Shown: one piece after another, positions 3,301-42,288 of the stretch | Layout of the letters: the number at the start of each line of letters is the position of its first letter | How positions within the stretch are numbered: the stretch's first letter is position 1 | The notes under the pieces: generated by a model | Seen by the model: only the letters and a program-made list of their open reading frames with translations | Told to the model about the DNA's origin: nothing | The model's database searches: none | NCBI GenBank assembly: GCA_965637545.1 | Contig: OZ281501.1 | Location: forward strand, 8,990,001 to 9,054,000 | Length of the DNA stretch: 64,000 nt | From: Phallusia mammillata | Taxonomy: Eukaryota | Direction: 5' to 3' | Translations under genes and position numbers: made by a program

Positions 3301-6300
3301 GTTTGTTATTAGTTGGTATTTTCTGGATGCCAATTGAACAACGAACCAGCTTAGTTTGCTTATATCAAATTGCAAATTAGAAAATACAACAAATATGTAC
3401 TGAATTATGTTTTAGCAACATCCTTAACCACAACAGCTAAAACCACCTCATTTCCTACCGGAAGTCCATCACCTTTGACCACAGCAGTAGTTACTAAATC
3501 TCCATCATGTGTTAAAACTGGTTGGACAGAATGGATGAGTGTTGATTCTCCACAGTTTGGTATGCTTCTTACAGTGTTTGACACACCTGTTTATAAAACT
3601 CATATTCAATTAACAGTGTGTTTTAGAGACATAAAATGGTAAAATTAAATACATATGGAGCACAGTGTTTAAAGTGCTGATAAAGTTAAATTGTTTATTT
3701 GTAATCCACCACTACTTACTGGCCTTAAAATGAGGTGAACAACCTTGCTGTTTGCTTTGTTGCAAAACATTTTGTATGTAGGGTCACCGGGCAATGACTT
3801 GGATACACTCGAAGTGCTTCGAGAAAAGTATTCATTTTGTACTGACTCCATGATTACTGACTTTGCATGTCGAATTGCGGATGATGAATACAACCACCAA
3901 CTTGTAGGTGGAAACAGTGAAAACTTTTCGTGTGACCAAAATGGTGTTTCTTGTTTACAAGAAGACCAGGTGGGTTGACATGTTTGTTTTATAGTTTGTG
4001 TGTTAAAGTTCGTGTGGTCTTTTGTTACAGCCTGCAGGCAGCTTCTGTTTTAACTTCGAAGTCCAGTTCTTCTGCCAGTGCAGAGCACTTTCCACACCAA
4101 GTTCTAGTAAGTGCCAGATACCTGGAAAATTGGTGCATAAAGTAGATTAAATAAGAAAAGGGATCATTTGATAACTTTCATAATAGGATAAAAGTATTTT
4201 GTACAGTATAACAACAAGATCTTAAACTTCTTAAATTATAAACACACACTAAAGTAATACATGTAAACCATACTTTTTGAAAAAAGTTTCCTTAATCTAC
4301 CTGTAGTTTAAGAGAAGGATAAGCACCACCTTAAAATCCATATGTAGTGAAATTAATAATTTTACTGAAAGTGTTGACCATTATAAAAATTGTATAGCCC
4401 CAACTCCATCACCAAGCACAACAACTGAAAGTTTAGTTTGCATTCCACGATGGACAAAATGGATCAACTCTGAAAAACCATCCAGATCCATTTACTCTGG
4501 TGACTTCCAGAGTTTGGACAACTTGGATGAAACATATGGATCAGAGTTCTGTTCAAGGTAATTGACATCAATCAACTTTATTTTGTGTGTGCACCAAATT
4601 GTTAACTTGCAACAAGTTTGGTCAGTTGTAACAAGTTTTTTGTTTCAAGGGAAATGATTTCTGATATTCAGTGTGTTTGTGCGCAATCTGGACAAGACTG
4701 GAAATATGCTGGTGATGAGATGCAGTGTGACTTGGAAAATGGATTAAAATGCCTCAACAGCAAACAGGTTTAGCATTAAATATATAAAATTTTAAAAACT
4801 TGCACAACAAAAAATTTTTATGGTTGAATCAAAACACCTGGTTTTACAGAAAAACTTCATGACTTGTTTTGATTACAAAGTGAGAGTTTACTGTGAGTGT
4901 GATCCAGCAAACCTCTCAACTATAGCCCAAGTAACAACCACTCCAGTGGTTACTACTAAAACAGTACCTGGTAAATATTATTTTTCTTTATGATAAAAAA
5001 CATCAAAAATAATATGTGTTAAATCATTCTATTGGTATTAAAAACATTTTTGTTCAGATTGTTTAAAAGTACTGGAAATGGGTTCCGCAGAGTTGGTGAA
5101 GATTACTGCATCTTCCACTGCTGCTAAAACAACTTTACGTAATGTTGATGTTAACTCCCAAGGTGGATGGGTTGCCAACCTCAACAACAAGTACTCAGTC
5201 CTGTACGGTTAACAAGTCTTTGGTAATTGACCATGTGTATTGCTTTAGGTACCAGTGGCTGACATTTGAACTGGATAGAATACATGAAATTGCTGGGATT
5301 AAAACAAAAGGCCACAGTCTGGGTATTGGTTGGGTTCGTCAATACACCCTTGGTTATAGTGATGATGGAGTTTACTTCCATCCCTACAAAAATCCCCAAA
5401 CAAATGAAGTTATAGTAAGAATATAAGAGTGTGTTGGGAACAGGATTTTGGGGTTAATGTTGACATTTTTAGGTATTTGATGCAAATGTGGATTCTGGCA
5501 CCGAAGTAATAAATCTGCTGCAAATGAACAACCTTATTTCAACAAAGTGGTTATGTATTCGCCCATCAGATTGGACTCTGTCTATTGCAATGAGAGCAAC
5601 AATCTTATTTTCATGCACTGGTAAGAATCTACCTTTTAAAGAAACACAAACACACACCTCAAACTTAAAGAGAACACTTAAAAATAGTGTATTTTACATT
5701 TCTTAGACAACCAGTTAACAACTGGACCTTTGTTTTCAACTACTGGTGAACGCACAACAGCGTTGGTAACTACATCTCCTTGCCAAGAAGGCTATCTTTG
5801 GAAGTCATGCGCATATAACTGTAGTAGACTTTGCCACAGCACTGCAGTACAGTATCCTGTATGTTCTTCTGATGCTGTTTATTGCATCGCTGCCTGTTTG
5901 CCACAAAATTTTACTGTAAGTTTTTTTATTTTTTTATTTAAGGTTTATAAATAGCAGCTGTATGTTGTATTGTGGTCTTACAGGCTTGTAAGTTGGGATG
6001 GAAGTTAGACAATGCTGGACGTTGTGTAAAGGCAGAAGATTGCCCATGTTACTCACCAAATGGAGTTCTGATTCCTCCAGGTAGTACTATAGTTGAAGAG
6101 GGCCAGGAATGTCTATGTTTTGGAAACACCCTAGAGTGTTCATCCGTTTCTACAACAATCAGCACTGTGGTAGGCAAATTTTCTTTTTTAGGTTTGTAAA
6201 ATTCTTTTAAAACTACAAAGTTTTGGGTACCTTTGTAAAAACAAATTTAAATCCACAAACAGTTCTAGTTTCATAAACATATATTGCAACATACCAATAT

Positions 6301-9300
6301 AATGTTTTAATTTTATGCCAGTAAGTTCTGCTTTTCTGATTTAATTACAAAAAAACAAGAACAGTGTCTTGTAGGCTGAAACAACTGCAACTACTGAAGC
6401 AGAGGTAACAACAATGTATGATGATTGTGTGTGGTGGGCCGACTGGCACAATATACGTTCACCAAGCAATGAAGCAGGTGATGATGAAGAGGGAGTTTCA
6501 GAACACACTGCAGTATCCGACTGCAAGTCACCTGTTGCAATTGAGTGCAGAGTTGCAGGATATGGTATTTCGTACCTTAGGTAAGTATTCTTTAATGTGT
6601 TGTTTCTTTTACCAGAGAAGTAGGCTAAAATAATTTGGTGTTTCTTTTTTGTTAGTATTGCATTGTCGTTGTGCTAAATTTCTCATAAGCTGGAGTTAAG
6701 TTGAACTTATGCATGTACAATGTATTCTATTGGCAGTTATCTGTTGTGTTTTTAATGTTTTAATATCACCATATTGTTTTTTTTAGATCTGGACAGAACG
6801 GTGTCCTTTGTGATCTCAAACATGGCCTGCAGTGCATTGGATTAAGGTTGTCAGGCAATATACCTAAGTGTTATGATTATGAAGTACGACTTGGATGTTA
6901 CAATGAGAGTTGCATTGTTACTACAGCTGCCACAACTCTTGGTGTCTCCAGCTCAACACCAGATGAAACCACGACAGCAAAAGTAGGCTGTAAAAGAAAT
7001 CTGCACATTTTTCATTTTTAACAAACTGATTGATTTACAGGTGACAACAGAACAAACAACTGAAACAATTAATCCATGCCCTAACTCTACAATTACCACC
7101 CCATGTCATGGATGTATGGTCAATGAATATTGCCACAATGGTGAATGCATCACAGTGGACAAATGCCCATGCATGATTGATGGAATAGCTCATGAGGCAT
7201 GTCATTTTTATGTCTATATTCTTTAATCTTTAGAACTTAAAATTAGTAAAGCTTGAGTCTTTTAGGTAATGTCCATACCAATTTTTTGACAAATGTTTTA
7301 CAGTTTTTGATTTTGATAGCTAGATTGAGTGATGACGTTGCCTTATTATTTATGTCTATTGTTATACCCTTACAAGTAAAGTACAAGTTAAGTACCAGCA
7401 CACATCAAATGAAAACTGCTACCTAACATTTTTCATTTTTAAACTACAAGTTTTGGCCCATATATTTTTACTCTGATAACGAAAAGAAAACTTTTTGAGT
7501 GTTTATTTCAGTGTTCAATTATTCGAAATATTGTGAAATTTATACAAGTGGGCTTTACAATCTCACTATTGTTTGGCCCATTCATTTCCTCACAACAATT
7601 TACCGTACCAGACTGGCATCTGCTGAAATGCACCTGCCAACCTTTCACTTCAGACAATCACTAGTATACTCATCATTAGGTCACCAAACAACAGAACTTT
7701 TTTTACTGATCTGGATTTCTTAAATACTGAAAAAATGTGCTTTTGTATGTTAAATCTAATTTGTTCTAAAAAAAATTTGTTTTTTAGGTCAACAGTATTT
7801 GGAAAAATTCTGCTCCATTATGCACCATATGTACCTGTTTTAACAATGTTGCACAGTGTGCACCACAGACATGTAACATCACTAGTGCAGACTGTTTATT
7901 TTCTGAAACATACAGCAAATCAGAAAATGAGTGTTGTGGCACGTGCAACTGTGCATGCATTGATGGAGAAAGAAGATGTGGATATGAAGGATGCGACTGT
8001 ATACCAAATGAATGGTGGTGTGATGGTTCGATAGACTGTCCAGATGGTTCTGATGAAAACCAGTGCTTTGAAACAACTCAACAACCAGTCAAAACAACCA
8101 AGATAACAGGGTGTGAAATTGATGGAGTGCATGTCGATGTTGGTGAGGAGTTAGTTAGTGACGTTTGCCACACAGCCGTTTGCATCAAAACCGGTGTGTT
8201 TGAGAAACGATATACTTGTCCCACGACCCAAAGCACCAAACCAATGGAAACAACCAAAGCCACCAAAACTACAACTGAAGAGCCTGGTTGCATGTACAAC
8301 GGCGTGCAGGTTGCTGTCGGAGTTGTTGTCGAAAACGGAACTTGTTACAAAGTTGTTTGCTATCACGACCGTGTTTTCAGGAAAGAGAGTACCTGCACAA
8401 CTCCACATAGTGTCAGTGACACAACTACACTTGGCACAACTGAAAATGTAGAAACAACCACTCGTGCTATTTCAGGCTGTTTGGTCGACGACGTGCTTCA
8501 TATGGATGTCGGAGCAGAAGTTGTTATCGACGCTTGCAACATTGCCATATGTATCAATGATGGTTTATACGAAATACGATACACGTGCAAAACACCGGAC
8601 ACCACTCCGATTACGGAAACGACCACCATTGAGAACGGATGCATCCACGACGGAGTACAGATTGCTGTTGGTGTTGTGATCGAGAATGGTACTTGTTACA
8701 AAGTGGTTTGCTACCACAACAATGTATTGAGAAACGAGACCACATGTACTACTCCACCTCAAACATCCACAGAACCGGATACAACGGCCATCACTGGTTG
8801 CGAAATCGATGGAGAGCATGTCGACGTTGGTGATGAGTTGGTTACTGACGATTGCCACACAGCCGTTTGTATTAAAAACGGTGTGTTCGAGATACGATAT
8901 ACTTGTCCCACGCCTGAAAGCACGAAACCAATGGAAACAACCAAAGCTACCGAAACTACAACTAAAGAGCCTGGTTGCATGTACAACGGCGTGCAGGTTG
9001 CTGTCGGAGTTGTTGTGGAAAACGGAACTTGTTACAAAGTTGTTTGCTATCACGACCGTGTTTTCAGGAAAGAGAGTACCTGCACAACTCCACATAGTGT
9101 CAGTGACACATCTACACTTGGCACAACTGAAACTGTAGAAACAACCACTCGTGCTATTTCAGGCTGTTTGGTCGACGGCGTGCTTCATATGGATGTCGGA
9201 GCAGAAGTTGTTATCGACGCTTGCAACATTGCCATATGTATCAATGATGGTTTATACGAAATACGATACACGTGCAAAACACCAGACACCACTCCGATTA

Positions 9301-12300
9301 CGGAAACGACCACCATTGAGAACGGATGTATCCACGACGGAGTACAGATTGCTGTTGGTGTTGTGATCGAGAATGGTACATGTTATAAAGTGGTTTGCTA
9401 CCACAACAATGTATTGAGAAACGAGACCACATGTACTACTCCACATCCGGGAACATCCACAGAATCGACTCCAACGGCCATCACTGGTTGCGAAATCGAT
9501 GGAGAACATGTCGACGTTGGTGATGAGTTGGTTACTGACGATTGCCACACAGCCGTTTGTATTAAAAACGGTGTGTTCGAGATACGATATACTTGTCCCA
9601 CGCCTGAAAGCACGAAACCAATGGAAACAACCAAAGCTACCGAAACTACAACTAAAGAGCCTGGTTGCATGTACAACGGCGTGCAGGTTGCTGTCGGAGT
9701 TGTTGTGGAAAACGGAACTTGTTACAAAGTTGTTTGCTATCACGACCGTGTTTTCAGGAAAGAGAGTACCTGCACAACTCCACATAGTGTCAGTGACACA
9801 ACTACACTTGGCACAACTGAAACTGTAGAAACAACCACTCGTGCTATTTCAGGCTGTTTGGTCGACGGCGTGCTTCATATGGATGTCGGAGCAGAAGTTG
9901 TTATCGACGCTTGCAACATTGCCATATGTATCAATGATGGTTTATACGAAATACGATACACGTGCAAAACACCAGACACCACTCCGATTACGGAAACGAC
10001 CACCATTGAGAACGGATGTATCCACGACGGAGTACAGATTGCTGTTGGTGTTGTGATCGAGAATGGTACATGTTATAAAGTGGTTTGCTACCACAACAAT
10101 GTATTGAGAAACGAGACCACATGTACTACTCCACATCCGGGAACATCCACAGAATCGACTCCAACGGCCATCACTGGTTGCGAAATCGATGGAGAACATG
10201 TCGACGTTGGTGATGAGTTGGTTACTGACGATTGCCACACAGCCGTTTGTATTAAAAACGGTGTGTTCGAGATACGATATACTTGTCCCACGACCGAAAT
10301 CACCAAACCCAATGAAACAACCGAAGCCACTGAAACTACAACTAAAGAGCCTGGTTGCATGTACAACGGCGTGCAGGTTGCTGTCGGAGTTGTTGTGGAA
10401 AACGGAACTTGTTACAAAGTTGTTTGCTATCACGACCGTGTTTTCAGGAAAGAGAGTACCTGCACAACTCCACATAGTGTCAGTGACACAACTACACTTG
10501 GCACAACTGAAACTGTAGAAACAACCACTCGTGCTATTTCAGGCTGTTTGGTCGACGGCGTGCTTCATATGGATGTCGGAGCAGAAGTTGTTATCGACGC
10601 TTGCAACATTGCCATATGTATCAATGATGGTTTATACGAAATACGATACACGTGCAAAACACCAGACACCACTCCGATTACGGAAACGACCACCATTGAG
10701 AACGGATGCATCCACGACGGAGTACAGATTGCTGTTGGTGTTGTGATCGAGAATGGTACATGTTATAAAGTGGTTTGCTACCACAACAATGTATTGAGAA
10801 ACGAGACCACATGTACTACTCCACATCCGGGAACATCCACAGAATCGACTCCAACGGCCATCACTGGTTGCGAAATCGATGGAGAGCATGTCGACGTTGG
10901 TGATGAGTTGGTTACTGACGATTGCCACACAGCCGTTTGTATTAAAAACGGTGTGTTCGAGATACGATATACTTGTCCCACGCCTGAAAGCACGAAACCA
11001 ATCGAAACAACCAAAGCTACCGAAACTACAACTAAAGAGCCTGGTTGCATGTACAACGGCGTCCAGGTTGCTGTCGGAGTTGTTGTCGAAAACGGAACTT
11101 GTTACAAAGTTGTTTGCTATCACGACCGTGTTTTCAGGAAAGAGAGTACCTGCACAACTCCACATAGTGTCAGTGACACAACTACACTTGGCACAACTGA
11201 AACTGTAGAAACAACCACTCGTGCTATTTCAGGCTGTTTGGTCGACGGCGTGCTTCATATGGATGTCGGAGCAGAAGTTGTTATCGACGCTTGCAACGTT
11301 GCCATATGTATCAATGATGGTTTATACGAAATACGATACACGTGCAAAACACCAGACACCACTCCGATTACGGAAACGACCACCATTGAGAACGGATGTA
11401 TCCACGACGGAGTACAGATTGCTGTTGGTGTTGTGATCGAGAATGGTACATGTTATAAAGTGGTTTGCTACCACAACAATGTATTGAGAAACGAGACCAC
11501 ATGTACTACTCCACATCCGGGAACATCCACAGAATCGACTCCAACGGCCATCACTGGTTGCGAAATCGATGGAGAACATGTCGACGTTGGTGATGAGTTG
11601 GTTACTGACGATTGCCACACAGCCGTTTGTATTAAAAACGGTGTGTTCGAGATACGATATACTTGTCCCACGACCCAAAGCACCAAACCAATGGAAACAA
11701 CCAAAGCTACCGAAACTACAACTAAAGAGCCTGGTTGCATGTACAACGGCGTCCAGGTTGCTGTCGGAGTTGTTGTGGAAAACGGAACTTGTTACAAAGT
11801 TGTTTGCTATCACGACCGTGTTTTCAGGAAAGAGAGTACCTGCACAACTCCGCATAGTGACACAACTACACTTGGCACAACTGAAACTGTAGAAACAACC
11901 ACTCGTGCTATTTCAGGCTGTTTGGTCGACGGCGTGCTTCATATGGATGTCGGAGCAGAAGTTGTTATCGACGCTTGCAACATTGCCATATGTATCAATG
12001 ATGGTTTATACGAAATACGATACACGTGCAAAACACCAGACACCACTCCGATTACGGAAACGACCACCATTGAGAACGGATGCATCCACGACGGAGTACA
12101 GATTGCTGTTGGTGTTGTGATCGAGAATGGTACATGTTATAAAGTGGTTTGCTACCACAACAATGTATTGAGAAACGAGACCACATGTACTACTCCACAT
12201 CCGGGAACATCCACAGAATCGACTCCAACGGCCATCACTGGTTGCGAAATCGATGGAGAGCATGTCGACGTTGGTGATGAGTTGGTTACTGACGATTGCC

Positions 12301-15300
12301 ACACAGCCGTTTGTATTAAAAACGGTGTGTTCGAGATACGATATACTTGTCCCACGACCGAAAGCACCAAACCCAATGAAGCAACCGAAGCCACTGAAAC
12401 TACAACTAAAGAGCCTGGTTGCATGTACAACGGCGTCCAGGTTGCTGTCGGAGTTGTTGTGGAAAACGGAACTTGTTACAAAGTTGTTTGCTATCACGAC
12501 CGTGTTTTCAGGAAAGAGAGTACCTGCACAACTCCGTATATTGACACAACTACACTTGGCACAACTGAAACTGTAGAAACAACCACTCGTGCTATTTCAG
12601 GCTGTTTGGTCGACGGCGTGCTTCATATGGATGTCGGAGCAGAAGTTGTTATCGACGCTTGCAACATTGCCATATGTATCAATGATGGTTTATACGAAAT
12701 ACGATACACGTGCAAAACACCAGACACCACTCCGATTACGGAAACGACCACCATTGAGAACGGATGCATCCACGACGGAGTACAGATTGCTGTTGGTGTT
12801 GTGATCGAGAATGGTACATGTTATAAAGTGGTTTGCTACCACAACAATGTATTGAGAAACGAGACCACATGTACTACTCCACATCCGGGAACATCCACAG
12901 AATCGACTCCAACGGCCATCACTGGTTGCGAAATCGATGGAGAGCATGTCGACGTTGGTGATGAGTTGGTTACTGACGATTGCCACACAGCCGTTTGTAT
13001 TAAAAACGGTGTGTTCGAGATACGATATACTTGTCCCACGACCGAAAGCACCAAACCCAATGAAGCAACCGAAGCCACTGAAACTACAACTAAAGAGCCT
13101 GGTTGCATGTACAACGGCGTGCAGGTTGCTGTCGGAGTTGTTGTGGAAAACGGAACTTGTTACAAAGTTGTTTGCTATCACGACCGTGTTTTCAGGAAAG
13201 AGAGTACCTGCACAACTCCGTATATTGACACAACTACACTTGGCACAACTGAAACTGTAGAAACAACCACTCGTGCTATTTCAGGCTGTTTGGTCGACGG
13301 CGTGCTTCATATGGATGTCGGAGCAGAAGTTGTTATCGACGCTTGCAACATTGCCATATGTATCAATGATGGTTTATACGAAATACGATACACGTGCAAA
13401 ACACCAGACACCACTCCGATTACGGAAACGACCACCATTGAGAACGGATGCATCCACGACGGAGTACAGATTGCTGTTGGTGTTGTGATCGAGAATGGTA
13501 CATGTTATAAAGTGGTTTGCTACCACAACAATGTATTGAGAAACGAGACCACATGTACTACTCCACATCCGGGAACATCCACAGAATCGACTCCAACGGC
13601 CATCACTGGTTGCGAAATCGATGGAGAGCATGTCGACGTTGGTGATGAGTTGGTTACTGACGATTGCCACACAGCCGTTTGTATTAAAAACGGTGTGTTC
13701 GAGATACGATATACTTGTCCCACGCCTGAAAGCACGAAACCAATCGAAACAACCAAAGCTACCGAAACTACAACTAAAGAGCCTGGTTGCATGTACAACG
13801 GCGTCCAGGTTGCTGTCGGAGTTGTTGTCGAAAACGGAACTTGTTACAAAGTTGTTTGCTATCACGACCGTGTTTTCAGGAAAGAGAGTACCTGCACAAC
13901 TCCACATAGTGTCAGTGACACAACTACACTTGGCACAACTGAAACTGTAGAAACAACCACTCGTGCTATTTCAGGCTGTTTGGTCGACGGCGTGCTTCAT
14001 ATGGATGTCGGAGCAGAAGTTGTTATCGACGCTTGCAACATTGCCATATGTATCAATGATGGTTTATACGAAATACGATACACGTGCAAAACACCAGACA
14101 CCACTCCGATTACGGAAACGACCACCATTGAGAACGGATGTATCCACGACGGAGTACAGATTGCTGTTGGTGTTGTGATCGAGAATGGTACATGTTATAA
14201 AGTGGTTTGCTACCACAACAATGTATTGAGAAACGAGACCACATGTACTACTCCACATCCGGGAACATCCACAGAATCGACTCCAACGGCCATCACTGGT
14301 TGCGAAATCGATGGAGAGCATGTCGACGTTGGTGATGAGTTGGTTACTGACGATTGCCACACAGCCGTTTGTATTAAAAACGGTGTGTTCGAGATACGAT
14401 ATACTTGTCCCACGACCGAAAGCACCAAACCCAATGAAGCAACCGAAGCCACTGAAACTACAACTAAAGAGCCTGGTTGCATGTACAACGGCGTGCAGGT
14501 TGCTGTCGGAGTTGTTGTGGAAAACGGAACTTGTTACAAAGTTGTTTGCTATCACGACCGTGTTTTCAGGAAAGAGAGTACCTGCACAACTCCGTATATT
14601 GACACAACTACACTTGGCACAACTGAAACTGTAGAAACAACCACTCGTGCTATTTCAGGCTGTTTGGTCGACGGCGTGCTTCATATGGATGTCGGAGCAG
14701 AAGTTGTTATCGACGCTTGCAACATTGCCATATGTATCAATGATGGTTTATACGAAATACGATACACGTGCAAAACACCAGACACCACTCCGATTACGGA
14801 AACGACCACCATTGAGAACGGATGCATCCACGACGGAGTACAGATTGCTGTTGGTGTTGTGATCGAGAATGGTACATGTTATAAAGTGGTTTGCTACCAC
14901 AACAATGTATTGAGAAACGAGACCACATGTACTACTCCACATCCGGGAACATCCACAGAATCGACTCCAACGGCCATCACTGGTTGCGAAATCGATGGAG
15001 AGCATGTCGACGTTGGTGATGAGTTGGTTACTGACGATTGCCACACAGCCGTTTGTATTAAAAACGGTGTGTTCGAGATACGATATACTTGTCCCACGAC
15101 CGAAAGCACCAAACCCAATGAAGCAACCGAAGCCACTGAAACTACAACTAAAGAGCCTGGTTGCATGTACAACGGCGTGCAGGTTGCTGTCGGAGTTGTT
15201 GTGGAAAACGGAACTTGTTACAAAGTTGTTTGCTATCACGACCGTGTTTTCAGGAAAGAGAGTACCTGCACAACTCCACATAGTGTCAGTGACACAACTA

Positions 15301-18300
15301 CACTTGGCACAACTGAAACTGTAGAAACAACCACTCGTGCTATTTCAGGCTGTTTGGTCGACGGCGTGCTTCATATGGATGTCGGAGCAGAAGTTGTTAT
15401 CGACGCTTGCAACATTGCCATATGTATCAATGATGGTTTATACGAAATACGATACACGTGCAAAACACCAGACACCACTCCGATTACGGAAACGACCACC
15501 ATTGAGAACGGATGTATCCACGACGGAGTACAGATTGCTGTTGGTGTTGTGATCGAGAATGGTACATGTTATAAAGTGGTTTGCTACCACAACAATGTAT
15601 TGAGAAACGAGACCACATGTACTACTCCACATCCGGGAACATCCACAGAATCGACTCCAACGGCCATCACTGGTTGCGAAATCGATGGAGAGCATGTCGA
15701 CGTTGGTGATGAGTTGGTTACTGACGATTGCCACACAGCCGTTTGTATTAAAAACGGTGTGTTCGAGATACGATATACTTGTCCCACGACCGAAAGCACC
15801 AAACCCAATGAAGCAACCGAAGCCACTGAAACTACAACTAAAGAGCCTGGTTGCATGTACAACGGCGTGCAGGTTGCTGTCGGAGTTGTTGTGGAAAACG
15901 GAACTTGTTACAAAGTTGTTTGCTATCACGACCGTGTTTTCAGGAAAGAGAGTACCTGCACAACTCCGCATAGTGTCAGTGACACAACTACACTTGGCAC
16001 AACTGAAACTGTAGAAACAACCACTCGTGCTATTTCAGGCTGTTTGGTCGACGGCGTGCTTCATATGGATGTCGGAGCAGAAGTTGTTATCGACGCTTGC
16101 AACGTTGCCATATGTATCAATGATGGTTTATACGAAATACGATACACGTGCAAAACACCAGACACCACTCCGATTACGGAAACGACCACCATTGAGAACG
16201 GATGCATCCACGACGGAGTACAGATTGCTGTTGGTGTTGTGATCGAGAATGGTACATGTTATAAAGTGGTTTGCTACCACAACAATGTATTGAGAAACGA
16301 GACCACATGTACTACTCCACATCCGGGAACATCCACAGAATCGACTCCAACGGCCATCACTGGTTGCGAAATCGATGGAGAGCATGTCGACGTTGGTGAT
16401 GAGTTGGTTACTGACGATTGCCACACAGCCGTTTGTATTAAAAACGGTGTGTTCGAGATACGATATACTTGTCCCACGACCGAAAGCACCAAACCCAATG
16501 AAGCAACCGAAGCCACTGAAACTACAACTAAAGAGCCTGGTTGCATGTACAACGGCGTGCAGGTTGCTGTCGGAGTTGTTGTGGAAAACGGAACTTGTTA
16601 CAAAGTTGTTTGCTATCACGACCGTGTTTTCAGGAAAGAGAGTACCTGCACAACTCCACATAGTGTCAGTGACACAACTACACTTGGCACAACTGAAACT
16701 GTAGAAACAACCACTCGTGCTATTTCAGGCTGTTTGGTCGACGGCGTGCTTCATATGGATGTCGGAGCAGAAGTTGTTATCGACGCTTGCAACATTGCCA
16801 TATGTATCAATGATGGTTTATACGAAATACGATACACGTGCAAAACACCAGACACCACTCCGATTACGGAAACGACCACCATTGAGAACGGATGCATCCA
16901 CGACGGAGTACAGATTGCTGTTGGTGTTGTGATCGAGAATGGTACATGTTATAAAGTGGTTTGCTACCACAACAATGTATTGAGAAACGAGACCACATGT
17001 ACTACTCCACATCCGGGAACATCCACAGAATCGACTCCAACGGCCATCACTGGTTGCGAAATCGATGGAGAGCATGTCGACGTTGGTGATGAGTTGGTTA
17101 CTGACGATTGCCACACAGCCGTTTGTATTAAAAACGGTGTGTTCGAGATACGATATACTTGTCCCACGACCGAAAGCACCAAACCCAATGAAGCAACCGA
17201 AGCCACTGAAACTACAACTAAAGAGCCTGGTTGCATGTACAACGGCGTGCAGGTTGCTGTCGGAGTTGTTGTGGAAAACGGAACTTGTTACAAAGTTGTT
17301 TGCTATCACGACCGTGTTTTCAGGAAAGAGAGTACCTGCACAACTCCGCATAGTGTCAGTGACACAACTACACTTGGCACAACTGAAACTGTAGAAACAA
17401 CCACTCGTGCTATTTCAGGCTGTTTGGTCGACGGCGTGCTTCATATGGATGTCGGAGCAGAAGTTGTTATCGACGCTTGCAACGTTGCCATATGTATCAA
17501 TGATGGTTTATACGAAATACGATACACGTGCAAAACACCAGACACCACTCCGATTACGGAAACGACCACCATTGAGAACGGATGCATCCACGACGGAGTA
17601 CAGATTGCTGTTGGTGTTGTGATCGAGAATGGTACATGTTATAAAGTGGTTTGCTACCACAACAATGTATTGAGAAACGAGACCACATGTACTACTCCAC
17701 ATCCGGGAACATCCACAGAATCGACTCCAACGGCCATCACTGGTTGCGAAATCGATGGAGAGCATGTCGACGTTGGTGATGAGTTGGTTACTGACGATTG
17801 CCACACAGCCGTTTGTATTAAAAACGGTGTGTTCGAGATACGATATACTTGTCCCACGACCGAAAGCACCAAACCCAATGAAGCAACCGAAGCCACTGAA
17901 ACTACAACTAAAGAGCCTGGTTGCATGTACAACGGCGTGCAGGTTGCTGTCGGAGTTGTTGTGGAAAACGGAACTTGTTACAAAGTTGTTTGCTATCACG
18001 ACCGTGTTTTCAGGAAAGAGAGTACCTGCACAACTCCGTATATTGACACAACTACACTTGGCACAACTGAAACTGTAGAAACAACCACTCGTGCTATTTC
18101 AGGCTGTTTGGTCGACGGCGTGCTTCATATGGATGTCGGAGCAGAAGTTGTTATCGACGCTTGCAACATTGCCATATGTATCAATGATGGTTTATACGAA
18201 ATACGATACACGTGCAAAACACCAGACACCACTCCGATTACGGAAACGACCACCATTGAGAACGGATGCATCCACGACGGAGTACAGATTGCTGTTGGTG

Positions 18301-21300
18301 TTGTGATCGAGAATGGTACATGTTATAAAGTGGTTTGCTACCACAACAATGTATTGAGAAACGAGACCACATGTACTACTCCACATCCGGGAACATCCAC
18401 AGAATCGACTCCAACGGCCATCACTGGTTGCGAAATCGATGGAGAGCATGTCGACGTTGGTGATGAGTTGGTTACTGACGATTGCCACACAGCCGTTTGT
18501 ATTAAAAACGGTGTGTTCGAGATACGATATACTTGTCCCACGACCGAAAGCACCAAACCCAATGAAGCAACCGAAGCCACTGAAACTACAACTAAAGAGC
18601 CTGGTTGCATGTACAACGGCGTGCAGGTTGCTGTCGGAGTTGTTGTGGAAAACGGAACTTGTTACAAAGTTGTTTGCTATCACGACCGTGTTTTCAGGAA
18701 AGAGAGTACCTGCACAACTCCGTATATTGACACAACTACACTTGGCACAACTGAAACTGTAGAAACAACCACTCGTGCTATTTCAGGCTGTTTGGTCGAC
18801 GGCGTGCTTCATATGGATGTCGGAGCAGAAGTTGTTATCGACGCTTGCAACATTGCCATATGTATCAATGATGGTTTATACGAAATACGATACACGTGCA
18901 AAACACCAGACACCACTCCGATTACGGAAACGACCACCATTGAGAACGGATGTATCCACGACGGAGTACAGATTGCTGTTGGTGTTGTGATCGAGAATGG
19001 TACATGTTATAAAGTGGTTTGCTACCACAACAATGTATTGAGAAACGAGACCACATGTACTACTCCACATCCGGGAACATCCACAGAATCGACTCCAACG
19101 GCCATCACTGGTTGCGAAATCGATGGAGAGCATGTCGACGTTGGTGATGAGTTGGTTACTGACGATTGCCACACAGCCGTTTGTATTAAAAACGGTGTGT
19201 TCGAGATACGATATACTTGTCCCACGACCGAAAGCACCAAACCCAATGAAGCAACCGAAGCCACTGAAACTACAACTAAAGAGCCTGGTTGCATGTACAA
19301 CGGCGTGCAGGTTGCTGTCGGAGTTGTTGTGGAAAACGGAACTTGTTACAAAGTTGTTTGCTATCACGACCGTGTTTTCAGGAAAGAGAGTACCTGCACA
19401 ACTCCGTATATTGACACAACTACACTTGGCACAACTGAAACTGTAGAAACAACCACTCGTGCTATTTCAGGCTGTTTGGTCGACGGCGTGCTTCATATGG
19501 ATGTCGGAGCAGAAGTTGTTATCGACGCTTGCAACATTGCCATATGTATCAATGATGGTTTATACGAAATACGATACACGTGCAAAACACCAGACACCAC
19601 TCCGATTACGGAAACGACCACCATTGAGAACGGATGCATCCACGACGGAGTACAGATTGCTGTTGGTGTTGTGATCGAGAATGGTACATGTTATAAAGTG
19701 GTTTGCTACCACAACAATGTATTGAGGAACGAGACCACATGTACTACTCCACATCCGGGAACATCCACAGAATCGACTCCAACGGCCATCACTGGTTGCG
19801 AAATCGATGGAGAGCATGTCGACGTTGGTGATGAGTTGGTTACTGACGATTGCCACACAGCCGTTTGTATTAAAAACGGTGTGTTCGAGATACGATATAC
19901 TTGTCCCACGACCGAAATCACCAAACCCAATGAAGCAACCGAAGCCACTGAAACTACAACTAAAGAGCCTGGTTGCATGTACAACGGCGTGCAGGTTGCT
20001 GTCGGAGTTGTTGTGGAAAACGGAACTTGTTACAAAGTTGTTTGCTATCACGACCGTGTTTTCAGGAAAGAGAGTACCTGCACAACTCCGTATATTGACA
20101 CAACTACACTTGGCACAACTGAAACTGTAGAAACAACCACTCGTGCTATTTCAGGCTGTTTGGTCGACGGCGTGCTTCATATGGATGTCGGAGCAGAAGT
20201 TGTTATCGACGCTTGCAACATTGCCATATGTATCAATGATGGTTTATACGAAATACGATACACGTGCAAAACACCAGATACCACTCCGATTACGGAAACG
20301 ACCACCATTGAGAACGGATGCATCCACGACGGAGTACAGATTGCTGTTGGTGTTGTGATCGAGAATGGTACATGTTATAAAGTGGTTTGCTACCACAACA
20401 ATGTATTGAGAAACGAGACCACATGTACTACTCCACATCCGGGAACATCCACAGAATCGACTCCAACGGCCATCACTGGTTGCGAAATCGATGGAGAGCA
20501 TGTCGACGTTGGTGATGAGTTGGTTACTGACGATTGCCACACAGCCGTTTGTATTAAAAACGGTGTGTTCGAGATACGATATACTTGTCCCACGACCGAA
20601 ATCACCAAACCCAATGAAGCAACCGAAGCCACTGAAACTACAACTAAAGAGCCTGGTTGCATGTACAACGGCGTGCAGGTTGCTGTCGGAGTTGTTGTGG
20701 AAAACGGAACTTGTTACAAAGTTGTTTGCTATCACGACCGTGTTTTCAGGAAAGAGAGTACCTGCACAACTCCGTATATTGACACAACTACACTTGGCAC
20801 AACTGAAACTGTAGAAACAACCACTCGTGCTATTTCAGGCTGTTTGGTCGACGGCGTGCTTCATATGGATGTCGGAGCAGAAGTTGTTATCGACGCTTGC
20901 AACATTGCCATATGTATCAATGATGGTTTATACGAAATACGATACACGTGCAAAACACCAGACACCACTCCGATTACGGAAACGACCACCATTGAGAACG
21001 GATGCATCCACGACGGAGTACAGATTGCTGTTGGTGTTGTGATCGAGAATGGTACATGTTATAAAGTGGTTTGCTACCACAACAATGTATTGAGAAACGA
21101 GACCACATGTACTACTCCACATCCGGGAACATCCACAGAATCGACTCCAACGGCCATCACTGGTTGCGAAATCGATGGAGAGCATGTCGACGTTGGTGAT
21201 GAGTTGGTTACTGACGATTGCCACACAGCCGTTTGTATTAAAAACGGTGTGTTCGAGATACGATATACTTGTCCCACGACCGAAAGCACCAAACCCAATG

Positions 21301-24300
21301 AAGCAACCGAAGCCACTGAAACTACAACTAAAGAGCCTGGTTGCATGTACAACGGCGTGCAGGTTGCTGTCGGAGTTGTTGTGGAAAACGGAACTTGTTA
21401 CAAAGTTGTTTGCTATCACGACCGTGTTTTCAGGAAAGAGAGTACCTGCACAACTCCGCATAGTGTCAGTGACACAACTACACTTGGCACAACTGAAACT
21501 GTAGAAACAACCACTCGTGCTATTTCAGGCTGTTTGGTCGACGGCGTGCTTCATATGGATGTCGGAGCAGAAGTTGTTATCGACGCTTGCAACGTTGCCA
21601 TATGTATCAATGATGGTTTATACGAAATACGATACACGTGCAAAACACCAGACACCACTCCGATTACGGAAACGACCACCATCGAGAACGGATGTATCCA
21701 CGACGGAGTACAGATTGCTGTTGGTGTTGTGATCGAGAATGGTACATGTTATAAAGTGGTTTGCTACCACAACAATGTATTGAGAAACGAGACCACATGT
21801 ACTACTCCACATCCGGGAACATCCACAGAATCGACTCCAACGGCCATCATTGGTTGCGAAATCGATGGAGAGCATGTCGACGTTGGTGATGAGTTGGTTA
21901 CTGACGATTGCCACACAGCCGTTTGTATTAAAAACGGTGTGTTTGAGATACGATATACTTGTCCCACGACCGAAATCACCAAACCCAATGAAGCAACCGA
22001 AGCCACTGAAACTACAACTAAAGAGCCTGGTTGCATGTACAACGGCGTGCAGGTTGCTGTCGGAGTTGTTGTGGAAAACGGAACTTGTTACAAAGTTGTT
22101 TGCTATCACGACCGTGTTTTCAGGAAAGAGAGTACCTGCACAACTCCGTATATTGACACAACTACACTTGGCACAACTGAAACTGTAGAAACAACCACTC
22201 GTGCTATTTCAGGCTGTTTGGTCGACGGCGTGCTTCATATGGATGTCGGAGCAGAAGTTGTTATCGACGCTTGCAACATTGCCATATGTATCAATGATGG
22301 TTTATACGAGATACGATACACGTGCAAAACACCAGACACCACTCCGATTACGGAAACGACCACCATTGAGAACGGATGCATCCACGACGGAGTACAGATT
22401 GCTGTTGGTGTTGTGATCGAGAATGGTACATGTTATAAAGTGGTTTGCTACCACAACAATGTATTGAGAAACGAGACCACATGTACTACTCCACATCCGG
22501 GAACATCCACAGAATCGACTCCAACGGCCATCACTGGTTGCGAAATCGATGGAGAGCATGTCGACGTTGGTGATGAGTTGGTTACTGACGATTGCCACAC
22601 AGCCGTTTGTATTAAAAACGGTGTGTTCGAGATACGATATACTTGTCCCACGACCGAAATCACCAAACCCAATGAAGCAACCGAAGCCACTGAAACTACA
22701 ACTAAAGAGCCTGGTTGCATGTACAACGGCGTGCAGGTTGCTGTCGGAGTTGTTGTGGAAAACGGAACTTGTTACAAAGTTGTTTGCTATCACGACCGTG
22801 TTTTCAGGAAAGAGAGTACCTGCACAACTCCGTATATTGACACAACTACACTTGGCACAACTGAAACTGTAGAAACAACCACTCGTGCTATTTCAGGCTG
22901 TTTGGTCGACGGCGTGCTTCATATGGATGTCGGAGCAGAAGTTGTTATCGACGCTTGCAACGTTGCCATATGTATCAATGATGGTTTATACGAAATACGA
23001 TACACGTGCAAAACACCAGACACCACTCCGATTACGGAAACGACCACCATTGAGAACGGATGCATTCACGACGGAGTACAGATTGCTGTTGGTGTTGTGA
23101 TCGAGAATGGTACATGTTATAAAGTGGTTTGCTACCACAACAATGTATTGAGAAACGAGACCACATGTACTACTCCACATCCGGGAACATCCACAGAATC
23201 GACTCCAACGGCCATCAATGGTTGCGAAATCGATGGAGAGCATGTCGACGTTGGTGATGAGTTGGTTACTGACGATTGCCACACAGCCGTTTGTATTAAA
23301 AACGGTGTGTTCGAGATACGATATACTTGTCCCACGACCGAAAGCACCAAACCCATTGAAACAACCGAAGCCACTGAAACTACAACTAAAGAGCCTGGTT
23401 GCATGTACAACGGTGTGCAGGTTGCTGTCGGAGTTGTTGTGGAAAACGGAACTTGTTACAAAGTTGTTTGCTATCACGACCGTGTTTTCAGGAAAGAGAG
23501 TACCTGCACAACTCCGCATAGTGACACAACTACACTTGGCACAACTGAAACTGTAGAAACAACCACTCGTGCTATTTCAGGCTGTTTGGTCGACGGCGTG
23601 CTTCATATGGATGTCGGAGCAGAAGTTGTTATCGACGCTTGCAACGTTGCCATATGTATCAATGATGGTTTATACGAAATACGATACACGTGCAAAACAC
23701 CAGACACCACTCCGATTACGGAAACGACCACCATTGAGAACGGATGTATCCACGACGGAGTACAGATTGCTGTTGGTGTTGTGATCGAGAATGGTACATG
23801 TTATAAAGTGGTTTGCTACCACAACAATGTATTGAGAAACGAGACCACATGTACTACTCCACATCCGGGAACATCCACAGAATCGACTCCAACGGCCATC
23901 ACTGGTTGCGAAATCGATGGAGAGCATGTCGACGTTGGTGATGAGTTGGTTACTGACGATTGCCACACAGCCGTTTGTATTAAAAACGGTGTGTTCGAGA
24001 TACGATATACTTGTCCCACGACCGAAAGCACCAAACCCATTGAAACAACCGAAGCCACTGAAACTACAACTAAAGAGCCTGGTTGCATGTACAACGGCGT
24101 GCAGGTTGCTGTCGGAGTTGTTGTGGAAAACGGAACTTGTTACAAAGTTGTTTGCTATCACGACCGTGTTTTCAGGAAAGAGAGTACCTGCACAACTCCA
24201 CATAGTGTCAGTGACACAACTACACTTGGCACAACTGAAACTGTAGAAACAACCACTCGTGCTATTTCAGGCTGTTTGGTCGACGGCGTGCTTCATATGG

Positions 24301-27300
24301 ATGTCGGAGCAGAAGTTGTTATCGACGCTTGCAACATTGCCATATGTATCAATGATGGTTTATACGAAATACGATACACGTGCAAAACACCAGACACCAC
24401 TCAGATTACAGAAACGACCACCATTGAGAACGGATGTATCCACGACGGAGTACAGATTGCTGTTGGTGTTGTGATCGAGAATGGTACATGTTATAAAGTG
24501 GTTTGCTACCACAACAATGTATTGAGAAACGAGACCACATGTACTACTCCACATCCGGGAACATCCACAGAATCGACTCCAACGGCCATCACTGGTTGCG
24601 AAATCGATGGAGAGCATGTCGACGTTGGTGATGAGTTGGTTACTGACGATTGCCACACAGCTGTTTGTATTAAAAACGGTGTGTTCGAGATACGATATAC
24701 TTGTCCCACGCCTGTAACCACGAAACCGATAAAAACAACCGAATCCACAGAGGTCACGGACACAACTGAAACTATAACTAAAGAGCCTGGTTGCATGTAC
24801 AACGGCGTGCAGGTTGCTGTCGGAGTTGTTGTGGAAAACGGAACTTGTTACAAAGTGATTTGTTTTAGGGATTATGTAATTAGAAATGAAACGACCTGCA
24901 CAACTGCATCTGTTTTGTCTTCTTCTACCACCCCTGCTGTTGGTACTACAACATCATCTCATACATCTGGTTGTATTTTCGAAAAATCGTACTACCCAGT
25001 CGGTGGAGTTCATGCGTTGGATGATGTATGCATGCTTTTATCGTTATTTCTAGCAAATGTGTTTTTTCTGATTATAATGTGTTTTAGGGTTGTGGTTCAT
25101 GCGAGTGTTTGGGAAGTGGAAAATGGAGTTGCAATACTGAAACTTGTGATCGAGAATGCATCATGTTTTCTGGCGATAGTTTCCGCACTTTTGATGGTTT
25201 AACCTTTTCCTATGATATTTGCTCTAACATCTTGGTGAAGGACTGCTATGGTCACGAATTTGAAGTGATAGGTAAGTTTCGTATTGTAGCTGTAGTCTAC
25301 TGAATTCACTGACCGGTTCATTGTTTTCGCAATTTGATGAATTCTCAAACTCGTGCTTTCAGTGTCTTTGGATTGCACATATATTCGTGGAAAACAACAT
25401 TGCAGAAAGTACTTGGATATAACCGTTGGATCTTTCAACATCATTTTGCCAAGTCGTCTTTACCTTCGCATAAATGGCCAAGCTTACCGCCTGCGATATC
25501 TCCCAAAAATTAACGGCTTGTTTAAATCCTTTGGGTGAGTGTTGGAAAATGTCAAGTACTAACAATTCTTAACTTTACAATGTTTGGATATAAAGGGAGA
25601 ATATAAGCATTGAATATGCTGGAGGCGAGATAATAGTCAGGACCGATCATTTCTACATCATGTGGAATCCAAAAACGCAACATGCAAGAAGTGTTGTTGA
25701 CGATACTTTGGCAGGTACTGAACTTCTTAGACTTACGTCAGTTATGATACACGTATTTTTTAATGTGAAGTGGTGGAGAGAAATAATATTTTTAGAATGT
25801 TATTTTATGATGTACCAAACGTTACATTACAGGTAAAACCTGTGGTTTGTGTTCGAATGATGATAGTAACCTGGAAGATGAACTTGAAATGCCTAACAAA
25901 CAGCTGGCTGAAACTGTTGACCAATTCGCGGACTCGTGGGCAGTTGCAGGTGAATCATGCGATGAACTACCAACTTGCACCGAGGAACAGCGGCTTCAGG
26001 CATTTGAATCCTGCAACCAACTAAGGTTATTTTTGGAAAAAACGTATTTTTTATTATTGTGGGATTGGCAAACATTCTTCTTGTCATACATTTGCCATTA
26101 ATTTTTTTTAAGTGGAACATTCTAGCATCTTTTCATGCATTCAAGTACGGGGATAATTTTAAGGTGAGTTACGCTCAACATTATTTCTTTCCAGAAACGC
26201 CGTGTTCTCTGATTGTGACACAGTTCTTCCTGTGGACGAGTTTTTACCGGCTTGCATGGCGTCATTTTGCGAGTGTAGCACCAACTCGTCCATGGATAAC
26301 GAACAGTGTCAGTGTGCTGTATTGGCCCAGTATGTAGAATCGTGCCAGCGACGCCTGGGAAAAGCAGTTGATAAATCATGGAGATATGATTTGGAATGTG
26401 GTAAGAATTCACTTGTGTGAGATAATGTTTTACTGTATTACCTAAATTTATAAACTGTCCGACGGCTTTTGTATGGTACATTTATGCTGTGACTGTGAGA
26501 CACCCTAAAATGGATTTAATTCAGTGGTCAGGGCACATCCTCGAATTTTATTTAGTGGTAACAGCAATGATGATTTTATGTGGCATGTTGTTGTATAGAG
26601 CCGCCATGTCCAGGCGGAGAGATTTGGCACGAATGCCATTCTGCTTGCCCAACCACCTGCCAGAACATGATGACTAGCACCCGCTATGAGATTGAACAAA
26701 ATTGCCAACCAGAATGCGTTTCTGGGTGCTTTTGCCCGGAGGGAGAAGTTTTGGATGGTGATGTGTGTAAAAAACCTGAAGAGTGCGATGAGTGTAAGCA
26801 AGAAGTGAATTAGTTGCCTTCTAACATATAATTTTGTATTTCGGCGAATGTATGCGTCTATTCAAGAAAAAAATAGTTGAATTTTTCCCTTTTAGGCACT
26901 TGCATCGGTTGGGGCGATCCTCATTACATGACTTACGACGAAAGGTATTTCCCCTTCCAAGGAAATTGCACCTATGTGTTGTCGAAACCGATTGAAGGAG
27001 ATGATTTTGAAATTCTTGGTCACAATGAGCCCTGCACGGTGGACCCTGTAACATCTTGCACGAAAGCCATCACTGTGATTTACAACAACCACGAAGTAAC
27101 GCTAATGCGAGACCGTAAGGTACAAAATCAGTAGCGGAGGCAATTGCTGATTTAAAGAGAACTAATGTGTTTACAATTTAGGTTACGTTTGATGGAAAAT
27201 ATGTTGCGCTGCCACTTAATGGTGACATTTCCGTATCTTCGGTAAACTCCAAACTGGTACTAACCGTGAACAAAATTAACCTTTACGTTGAGTTTGACGA

Positions 27301-30300
27301 ATACAACCATGGATTTGCAATCAAAATACCAATCTACCATTACTTCAACAAAACTGAAGGACTATGCGGTAATACTTACTGACAAACAATATTTCAACGA
27401 CGAATGTAGATACTATACACATACAGTTTGCCTTATCTGAACACTTCGTTGGTTCCGTATTTTACTGCTTGTGTTGTCACAAATCCTTTTTGATATTTTC
27501 TGCACACACAATTCAGCGATATAGGTTGTGTAGTTTAAGTGCGTGTAACCTTTTTCATTTGTTTAGGAAACTGCAACAAAAACCCCGGCGATGACTTTAA
27601 GAAACAAGATGGAAACCAAACAGAAAATGCAAACGATTTCGCATTTAGTTGGTTTAAGGATGGTTACAATGATTCAAATTGCGAACCTGAACCGGAAAGT
27701 TGTACACCTGGTTCCCCCGGGTGTTGCGAAGAAGATGCCGACCTTACAATATGCAACATCATTAATTCGACCATCTTTGAGGTGGGCGTTTAAATGTGAT
27801 TTTGAATATTCATAATAAATTTGTGTGCACAGTTAATGATTTTGAACTCTACCACGAATGTTTCTTAATTTCGTTTTAAAGTTTGAAAGCAAATTCTAAG
27901 AAATATCGCAAGCGAGAGCCGTGATTTTAACAATATTCTGTTTCATGTAGGAGTGCCGCATGGTGGTTAATCCAGACAATTTTATATCTTCATGTCAATT
28001 TGACACATGTTCTGGTTCTGGTGGATGTGATGCTATCACCGCATATGCTGACGCCTGCGAAAGGGAAGGAATATGCATTGTATGGCGAAACGAAATCACC
28101 TGCCGTAAGTTTCTTGTGCCATTATACGATTGTTTTCAGTATCATATATAACGCTAGGTGGCGTACATGAATAGTTTATCCGCAGCATCGCTAGATATTC
28201 TTTAATTTATGTTATTTTGTTTGCCATTCAAAGATGAATTTGATTTTCCACCGTTGTAAGCTCGAAACAGAGATCAGACCTTCTCATTTTTTTCCTGGTT
28301 TCGTAACTAAAAACTATATGTAAGAGGTTGTTCGAAAAGGCAGTTTGGTGCTTCAACTTCAGACGTTAATTGTCGCTTTTGTATAATTGCCAACAGTACA
28401 AATGCGTAAATTAATTAACTGACACTTATATAACGAAGCGAACAGCTTCCAAGAAAAAGTCAAGGCGTGCTGTATTTCAAATTAATCTAACCGCAACTCT
28501 AATCTCCGTGCCACCTTTTAACTAAGCTTATCTCTTGCCTGCTAAGAAATGTGGCCCGGCAAGTTTCCGTGCTATGGAGTGTTGTCTGTATCGCTCTTTC
28601 TGTTTATTTAGCGCGGGATTGCCCGTATCCATTTGTGTATCACGAATGCTCGACGGAATGCGCCAAGACCTGCGATGCACCCATCAACACGTCGGAGTGC
28701 AAACCTGAAAGTGGTTGTCTTTGCCCTGACGGTCTTTTACTGAGCAACGGACAATGCGTCCAACTCGAAGATTGCCGTAAGTAACCTCTTAAACAGCTAA
28801 ATGATCACTACACGTGATCATCTTGACATTTTAGTTGTTGCAAGATATTTTAAGTGTAAAATTCGCACATATTAAGCAACGAGGCTGTCATCAGTCGATT
28901 TCGTAAAAAACAAAAAAATATCATGACATTTCATTAGCGCAGCGATTCTCAGCTAGTGGGCCATGGCCCTACACTCATTTTTACAAGAATAATGGCTTGG
29001 GGAGGAATTGAAAAGGAATGTAAATGAATTTAAATTATGCAATTTACGGCATAAAGTTACTTTGAGTTTCTGCAACCCTGTATGTTTATGATGTAATAAA
29101 CTACTTTGTGATTACAATAAAGCCAGCAGCATAATAGCAGCATATCCATTGTCCAATTACTCGGTCATAACTGAACGTGCTTGATTAAAGAAGGGAAAGT
29201 GCTGTTTTATGATTTTTTTAAATTAAGTTATTTTGAACTTATAATCTGTTTGAAATATGTTCTGCAGTTTTTTTGTGCTGAACCTATTTTGTAGTTGTTT
29301 TCTTTCATTTATAAAAATTTACTGGGCCACAGAATTTTCGTGCAATGAAAGTGGGCCACGAAAGAAATAAAGTTGAGAACCACTGCATTAGCATGAACGC
29401 TAAATAAGTCGTGACTTCTGTGTCCAAAAATAAATGTATACAGAATTAAGACCGAGAAAGTTGTTAAATTAAATTAAATGTACGTAGACTTTTTTTCGAA
29501 AATCCGTTTTAATTTTTTTGTGCTTGTTAAATTTGTAACATACGCGTCGGTCGGTTTTGTTTTGTAAATGAAACATGTGTGATTACTTGTAAGCATCTTG
29601 AATCATGTTGACGCTTTTCAAATTGAGTCTGCAATAAACCACACATCTGGGATTATTACTTTACATAAACCAAAAATATTTTGCAGCGGTTTGTGTGGAT
29701 ACCAATGATGTGCCGCGAAAATTGAACGAGGAGTGGAATTTAGCGGAAGATCCTTGTGTCACTTGTACTTGTTTGTCGACCGGCCGTGTTGTGTGCACTG
29801 CCATGAAATGTTCAATGCCAACGGTATAATTGTGGGTAAAAAATAAAAAAGAGTTGTATGCACTGATATCGTTTGCTGTAGATGTGTGCACCTGGTGAAA
29901 AGCTTGTACAATCCAACGATACAACCGTCTGTTGTGCAACGTACTCTTGTGAAGCTTGTGATGACGTTTCCGACTGTTCATCTCCACACAGTACACCTAT
30001 TTGTGCAAGGGGAATGACGTTGGAGAAAAGCTACGTGCAAGGAGACTGTTGTCCCATCTACACCTGTGGTGCGTAACTCAGTTGTTTTCGAATATGGATT
30101 GGTAGTATTTGGTAGGAAAAACGTTTCGGTACTTATATGACATGACGTAACTAATTTTCCCCCCATAAATTAAAAAAAAATACATACGGTACATTTAACT
30201 GTTTTCTAAACCGCTTTGTTTTGTTTTCATAAAGTATGTGATCCCTCTTTGTGTGATACGACGGAACCAACTTGTGGCGAATATAAGGTGCCAGTTGTCA

Positions 30301-42242: not shown

Positions 42243-42288
42243 AAAGTAAAAAAAGTGTTTGTCCTAATAGTATCAGCATTTCAGCATT

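Follow-up and report, generated by a model that had tools for sequence, protein, structure and literature searches.

Within a 64,000-nucleotide stretch of the Phallusia mammillata genome (assembly GCA_965637545.1, contig OZ281501.1, positions 8,990,001 to 9,054,000 of the forward strand), referred to below as the window and used for all positions, we find a single exon of 17,238 nucleotides in a gene that by its predicted domains is of the gel-forming-mucin type. The exon encodes 98 small modules of four cysteines each, separated by 97 short linkers with the composition of mucin PTS (proline, threonine, serine) sequence. As an explanation of the whole, we consider it probable that this is a mucin gene in which an exon of segmented beads and linkers has been amplified, and that its product would form a secreted network.

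The giant exon was delimited by its open frame and by inspection of the splice borders. It covers positions 7788-25025 of the plus strand, or 5,746 codons, and is in phase 0 at both ends. The open frame itself runs from 7788 to 25199, past the donor. The acceptor at 7788 consists of a polypyrimidine tract and AG (ttttttag/G, the slash marking the border), the donor follows 25025 (GATGAT/gtatgc), and a further AG precedes the next exon, which begins at 25088 and is likewise in phase 0. The G+C content is 46% within the exon compared to about 36% in the flanks, and it is impossible that an unbroken frame of 5,746 codons at 46% G+C arose by chance. An earlier note on this DNA, made from the letters alone, had described a 17.2-kb exon of 5,746 codons, and the open frame with its AG and GT borders bears this out. 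The note also placed the exon among the largest coding exons (titin about 17 kb). The size is real, but it is ordinary for mucins, since MUC2, MUC5AC and MUC5B regularly have large exons that encode both repeats and cysteine-rich domains, and human alleles of mucin repeat exons can be as long as 27.8 kb and more (PMC13345508). The exon and its parts are as follows.

7788..25025, plus strand: giant single exon, with open frame, AG acceptor and GT donor
7794..7946, plus strand: C-terminal two thirds of a probable VWC domain at the exon start (Pfam VWC positions 12-57, E 1e-5, just under the curated cut-off)
7956..8066, plus strand: probable LDL-receptor class A module (Pfam Ldl_recept_a, E 0.001-0.04, under the cut-off; typical CDGxxDCxDGSDE motif)
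8112..24899, plus strand: 98 four-cysteine modules of predicted Fn1/E type with 97 Thr/Pro/Glu-rich linkers, in the order A-B-A'-B' x24.5 (pattern scan, unit alignment, fold model)
24972..25025, plus strand: N-terminal part of a VWC domain, completed in the next exon (reads C-x3..YYPVGG..DD / GCGSCEC.. across the intron)

The repeat was analyzed with a regular-expression scan of the exon and with our own alignment of the units, since Tandem Repeats Finder, limited to a longest period of 500 bp, gave no rows for an array with a longer unit. The scan returned 98 modules of the form C-x17/18-C-x4-C-x11-C with exactly four cysteines in every one of them (392 in total). A module measures 36-37 residues from first to last cysteine, or 37-38 residues when the invariant preceding glycine is counted. 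The first module type starts 25 times at a spacing of 228-230 residues, which gives 24 full units and a half unit, each full unit being 684-690 bp long with the module order A-B-A'-B'. The earlier count of 24.5 units, four modules per unit and 392 cysteines was thus correct. The A and A' modules are 57% identical and the B and B' modules 72%, compared to about 30% between the A and B types; as the two half-units are also 63% identical in DNA, the repeat has three levels. Between units the DNA identity is 97-100%, the first unit being 94-95% identical to the rest. It is the first unit and the last half-unit that diverge most, units 2, 3, 5, 6 and 9 form one sub-family, and units of 684 and 690 bp are mixed in no periodic order. 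Open frames of 196-198 residues per unit on the minus strand, with one stop per unit, were set aside as a by-product of the repeat.

The 97 linkers are 17-29 residues long, contain no cysteine and consist of 39% threonine, 11.5% glutamate, 11% proline and 6% serine, in agreement with the Thr/Glu/Pro character ascribed to them before. Together they make up 2,044 of the 5,596 residues of the array (36%), all of PTS-type composition, while folded beads account for 63%. The modules are devoid of proline, contain 26% valine or isoleucine and carry 74 N-x-S/T sequons. The earlier note saw the array as standing in place of a PTS domain. This view has to be modified, since 36% of the array is itself Thr/Pro-rich linker and a small conventional PTS exon is present upstream at about 1474-1992. 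With 39% threonine and 11% proline the linkers can be regarded as short PTS pieces, and the PTS domain appears to be divided into 97 such pieces rather than replaced. Given this composition, dense O-glycosylation would be the expected state of the linkers.

Units that are 97-100% identical belong to a type of sequence that assemblers mishandle, and the array might be an assembly expansion or a mis-join, with far fewer units in the true locus. Four public sequencing runs were compared with window positions 24400-30300. In one of them, the short-read DNA run X2, which belongs to another study than the sample probably used for the assembly, the word depth was 182.9 on a contig of 89 nt (24768-24856) and 8.1-9.75 on its single-copy neighbours. 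The ratio, 19-23, serves as a rough guide to copy number only. Most of the 31-mers in this contig are present 19-23 times in the assembly, the mean for the whole contig being 18 (it has 8 unique words at its 5' end). The depth in X2 therefore matches the assembled copy number and the array is not an assembly expansion; the read-depth check proposed in the earlier note, which might have revealed far fewer units, came out in line with the assembly. The differences between the units point in the same direction, as the two length forms, the sub-family and the divergent edge units are irregularly placed, and a homogenised centre with divergent edges is the pattern expected of a natural tandem array. 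We regard an assembly artefact as very improbable.

Array sequence is also found in RNA. In run X10, a contig of 720 nt (depth 9.8) lies within the array and continues from one unit into the next, and runs X7 and X10 together contain five GT..AG joints between downstream exons (26399>26598, 26793>26896, 28776>29687, 29822>29881 and 30067>30234). It is likely that one transcript carries the whole array. At the protein level, the variant codons among units 2-24 were sorted by their effect; in the modules 9 are synonymous and 1 is non-synonymous, compared to 8 and 14 in the linkers (Fisher p = 0.007), and the cysteine columns are invariant among the units. This pattern shows protein-level constraint on the modules, whereas the linkers are free to change within a given composition. 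These data also bear on the possibility that the DNA is real but mostly never ends up in a mature protein, either as a decaying pseudo-exon or as a repeat that is spliced out internally. Such a fate would agree with the RNA contigs, none of which spans the junctions of the giant exon (into 7788, and 25025>25088), and with the finding that the repeat is missing from every public protein set searched. It is difficult to reconcile with 5,746 codons without a stop, with the 9 to 1 ratio in the modules and the retention of 392 out of 392 cysteines, or with an RNA contig that reads from unit to unit, and we consider it quite improbable.

The fold of the bead was analyzed by profile searches and by structure prediction. 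The modules match Pfam VWC over profile positions 1-38 only, scoring 15-18 bits where the cut-off is 27.6 (E 0.005), and Pfam Fn1_2 (PF23003) below the cut-off (E 0.3), where the four cysteines agree but the spacing is C-x4-C rather than the C-x-C of Fn1. Matches to Pfam 'Phage_YunG-like', FmdE and Fn3_Dep-1 (E 2e-4 to 0.3, all sub-cut-off) were dismissed as effects of chance or composition. With an alignment of 18 module sequences as input, AlphaFold2 predicted module A to form a two-stranded hairpin followed by a three-stranded sheet, at a predicted local distance difference test score (pLDDT) of 91.7, which supports the folded beads-on-a-string chain suggested before. A prediction for the whole 230-residue unit, made without an alignment, reached a pLDDT of 47 and was not used in the fold searches. 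The top Foldseek matches of the module, without exception of the same type, were E modules (MUC2, VWF and FCGBP), VWC domains (CCN3 and collagen IIA) and Fn1 modules, with weak E-values of 0.3 and above, as expected for 40 residues. VIA-align gave VWF E3 as the best match (6n29 1197-1240, Z 5.6, root-mean-square deviation 1.7 Å over 39 of 40 residues), followed by Fn1 modules at Z 4.5-5.4; Z values below 8 can reflect a common arrangement. The best structural matches also include a module of FCGBP, the E' module of VWF and the VWC domain of CCN3. We base the fold assignment on the consistency of these matches together with the sequence motifs, as the bead shares with the E, Fn1 and VWC N-subdomain modules the predicted hairpin and three-stranded sheet as well as an invariant starting C-x3-G...G motif. 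On the predicted model, the bead belongs to the Fn1 / VWF-E / VWC-N-subdomain fold class.

Judged by its cysteines, the bead is not a full member of either the E or the VWC family. The Fn1-like two-sheet fold of VWF E is seen in the predicted model, but E has six cysteines in three disulfides and the bead has four; the ten cysteines, two subdomains and above-gathering score of a complete VWC (PF00093) were not found, and a language-model atlas returned VWC-like families with low scores only. Nor is the bead an unrecognised module, since in addition to this fold it has a relative in a well-known mucin. When a profile of the module was compared with the sequences of solved chains, the best match was human MUC5AC (E 2e-5), at a four-cysteine module directly after E3 of the D3 assembly. 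This module, with cysteines spaced in the same manner as in the bead, reads C-x21-C-x4-C-x12-C and is located between E3 and PTS1 (chains 8qtb and 9gvj), in a part of MUC5AC that was too flexible to model in published cryo-electron microscopy structures (PMC11933400, PMC11912381). The bead thus has a single-copy counterpart in human MUC5AC.

An exhaustive phmmer search with one unit against 1.84 billion representative proteins gave two matches (identity 31-34%, E 2e-8 and 5e-6, hence neither below 1e-10). One is a 1,055-residue protein of the chiton Liolophura sinensis (XP_064614883, P0001) that was automatically named 'kielin/chordin-like', the other an unnamed 565-residue protein from an ENA assembly (P0002). 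Like the array, both have four-cysteine modules joined by Thr/Pro linkers, with six invariant positions (four cysteines and two glycines) and a slightly variable spacing. The chiton protein has at least 17 such modules by a simple pattern scan, of two types that partly alternate, and matches Pfam Fn1_2 at 2e-22, compared to E 0.3 for the modules in the window. Unlike the array gene, the two proteins lack VWD, CysD and cystine-knot parts, their repeats are not near-identical, and they comprise only 1,055 and 565 residues; the chiton protein ends in a hydrophobic tail. The chiton locus (CM072731.1; L001 3001-7009) is an independent small-scale example of the design of beads and linkers. Word-index searches found neither the array among proteins of 3,160-10,055 residues nor a protein match to the VWC and LDL-receptor class A head of the exon. 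That arrays of this kind are not visible in public protein sets is most likely due to their collapse in short-read assemblies.

The name of the chiton protein, the resemblance of the module to the N-terminal subdomain of VWC, and the low-scoring VWC families among the language-model look-alikes raise the question of whether the array could be a multivalent trap for growth factors of the bone morphogenetic protein type, as in kielin/chordin-like proteins, rather than a structural mucin. The modules lack the second subdomain of VWC, however, and are joined by mucin-type linkers; the gene has the flanks of a polymerising mucin, and 98 near-identical copies suit a material better than a regulator. 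We therefore consider a trap highly improbable.

The flanks referred to are formed by the following exons.

333-458, 3068-3334, 4606-4770 and 6764-7018, plus strand: CysD exons (Pfam Mucin2_WxxW, PF13330, E 6e-14 to 7e-4, three of the four above the cut-off)
1474..1992, plus strand: conventional small PTS exon between CysD exons, with Thr/Pro repeats of about 12 residues (translation, 46% Thr+Ser+Pro; coordinates are those of the open stretch)
5688-6196, plus strand: TIL/TILa-like exons (Pfam TIL and TILa, weak)
25088..26810, plus strand: first VWD-C8-TIL unit after the array (Pfam VWD weak, C8 5e-12, TIL 1e-10; RNA joints 26399>26598 and 26793>26896)
26877..28781, plus strand: second VWD-C8-TIL unit, with a GDPH motif in VWD (Pfam VWD 2e-17 and 4e-5, C8 2e-13, TIL 2e-9; translation)
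29638..31797, plus strand: VWC-type and other cysteine-rich exons (Pfam VWC 4e-4 and 1e-3, below the cut-off; RNA joints 28776>29687, 29822>29881 and 30067>30234)
32080..32711, plus strand: C-terminal cystine knot in two exons at the gene end (Pfam Cys_knot and DAN; stop after 32711)

The upstream exons span 333..7018 on the plus strand, and since the first one seen, at 333, is already a CysD exon, the gene continues beyond the 5' end of the window. It is clear from the Pfam domains that the array lies, as stated in the earlier note, between the CysD region and the C-terminal VWD and cystine-knot region, all on the same strand. Of the features that define a gel-forming mucin, CysD domains in the central region and a C-terminal part with VWD-C8-TIL, VWC and cystine knot are found; of the large PTS tandem-repeat exon, the exon and the repeats are present, with only the linkers being PTS-like. 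By its flanks, the host gene is of the gel-forming-mucin type. The GDPH sequence is the autocatalytic cleavage motif of the D4 domains of MUC2 and MUC5AC and of FCGBP. Short introns (58-198 bp) are in line with a report on Ciona (PMC4948705). One intronic segment, 28931-29521, is an interspersed repeat, with a DNA contig depth of 330-2,400 compared to 9-27 in its flanks in two runs, suggesting genomic copies in the order of 100.

Among known mucins, human MUC5AC and MUC5B come closest to the array gene, as they have a giant central exon of near-identical repeats in which cysteine-rich domains alternate with sequence for O-glycosylation (PMC13345508; PMC4948705). Their flanks are similar too, with CysD, VWD-C8-TIL, VWC and cystine knot, except that the array is followed by two VWD-C8-TIL units, where MUC2 and the MUC5 mucins have a single D4. 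The central parts differ in scale, since MUC5AC and MUC5B have 7-9 CysD domains of about 100 residues with hundreds of PTS residues between them, compared to 98 modules of 36 residues and of another fold with 17-29 residues between them in the array. The bead for its part differs from its structural relatives by having four cysteines rather than the six of E and the ten of full VWC, and C-x4-C in place of the C-x-C of Fn1. Amplification of a small cysteine-rich module from the VWF toolbox into a long array is also seen in kielin/KCP, with tandem VWC domains, and in mouse zonadhesin, with tandem partial D3 domains. These proteins differ from the array by using complete VWC domains or larger D fragments, by the lack of mucin-type linkers, and by being encoded in many exons. 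The alternation of small disulfide modules with O-glycosylated spacers is shared with the integumentary mucins of frogs, which have trefoil or sushi modules between Thr-rich repeats, and with insect intestinal mucins and peritrophins, which have chitin-binding domains between mucin stretches; in both groups the module folds are unrelated, the modules far fewer and the flanking domains different. In the literature searched, the coverage of which is incomplete and leaves absence unproven, a mucin such as this one was not described. The array is an unusual but recognisable variation on the middle region of a mucin: the size of the exon and the general principle are ordinary, and what is unusual is the kind of bead, the number of beads (98) and the reversed proportions of folded and glycosylated sequence.

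Seen as a mucin with a segmented central exon, the gene could work in the following way. A unit of 687 bp has been amplified to 24.5 copies that are held nearly uniform, much like the repeats in the exons of other mucins. Each module would be locked by two disulfides. The linkers, densely O-glycosylated, would serve as stiff spacers between these beads, giving a bottle-brush that is divided into segments. If a module is taken to be about 3 nm long and each glycosylated linker residue to add about 0.25 nm, this exon alone would account for a contour length of roughly 0.8 micrometre. The bare, Val/Ile-rich beads, with their 74 N-glycan sequons, may serve as regularly spaced and sparsely glycosylated interaction sites, a role that CysD has in MUC5AC and MUC5B. 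The cystine knot would link monomers tail-to-tail and D assemblies would link them further, so that a secreted network results. Several points weigh against this explanation, namely the roughness of the word depth as a measure of copy number, the weak Foldseek E-values and the low VIA-align Z values described above, the RNA contigs that stop short of both junctions of the giant exon, and the position of the N-terminal part of the gene outside the window, which makes the polymerising D1-D3 end an assumption.

The earlier note went further and proposed a role for the beaded chain, elastic or filamentous, in a filter-feeding mucus net, a tunic or an adhesive. The architecture would indeed give a long and regularly segmented polymer, and the ascidian endostyle makes regular mucus nets (PMC6109156). 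On the other hand, two disulfides within 36 residues could add little extensibility, and if they cross-link modules this small, elasticity by module unfolding is unlikely. Our search of the literature, again with incomplete coverage, found no protein inventory of the ascidian mucus net. In sum we find this use of the chain improbable. We attach an equally low probability to the bolder proposal that the gene represents an undescribed class of 'segmented' mucins, with around 100 disulfide-locked Fn1/E-type beads and short glycosylated spacers instead of a continuous bottle-brush, and that such a mucin is the fibre of a regular mesh, e.g. the pharyngeal filter net of ascidians.

The usual account of mucin physics considers long, unbroken PTS stretches that are densely glycosylated, together with a few cross-linking CysD domains. 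The present gene inverts this ratio, with 98 folded beads to 97 very short spacers that are predicted to be glycosylated, in an arrangement that is kept uniform and is under selection. It thus provides a natural experiment on how gel or fibre properties depend on the spacing between folded beads and glycosylated spacers, and it may provide a candidate component of chordate filter-feeding mucus. It also shows that a small E/Fn1-type module, of which human MUC5AC has one copy beside D3, can become the repeat unit of a mucin.

Other genes in the window are found downstream of the array gene. Overlapping open reading frames of 159 and 146 residues at 61863-62755 on the minus strand, one of them with DUF7041, have the appearance of a retroelement gag remnant, and a word-index protein search gave no relatives for the gag-like frame. 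At 39966-40538, also on the minus strand and hence opposite to the array gene, EGF-domain and ZP-N-domain exons belong to a separate gene of the zona-pellucida type. Two sets of PLAC8-family exons on the plus strand (42271-43458 and 54282-54720) probably represent a duplicated small gene.

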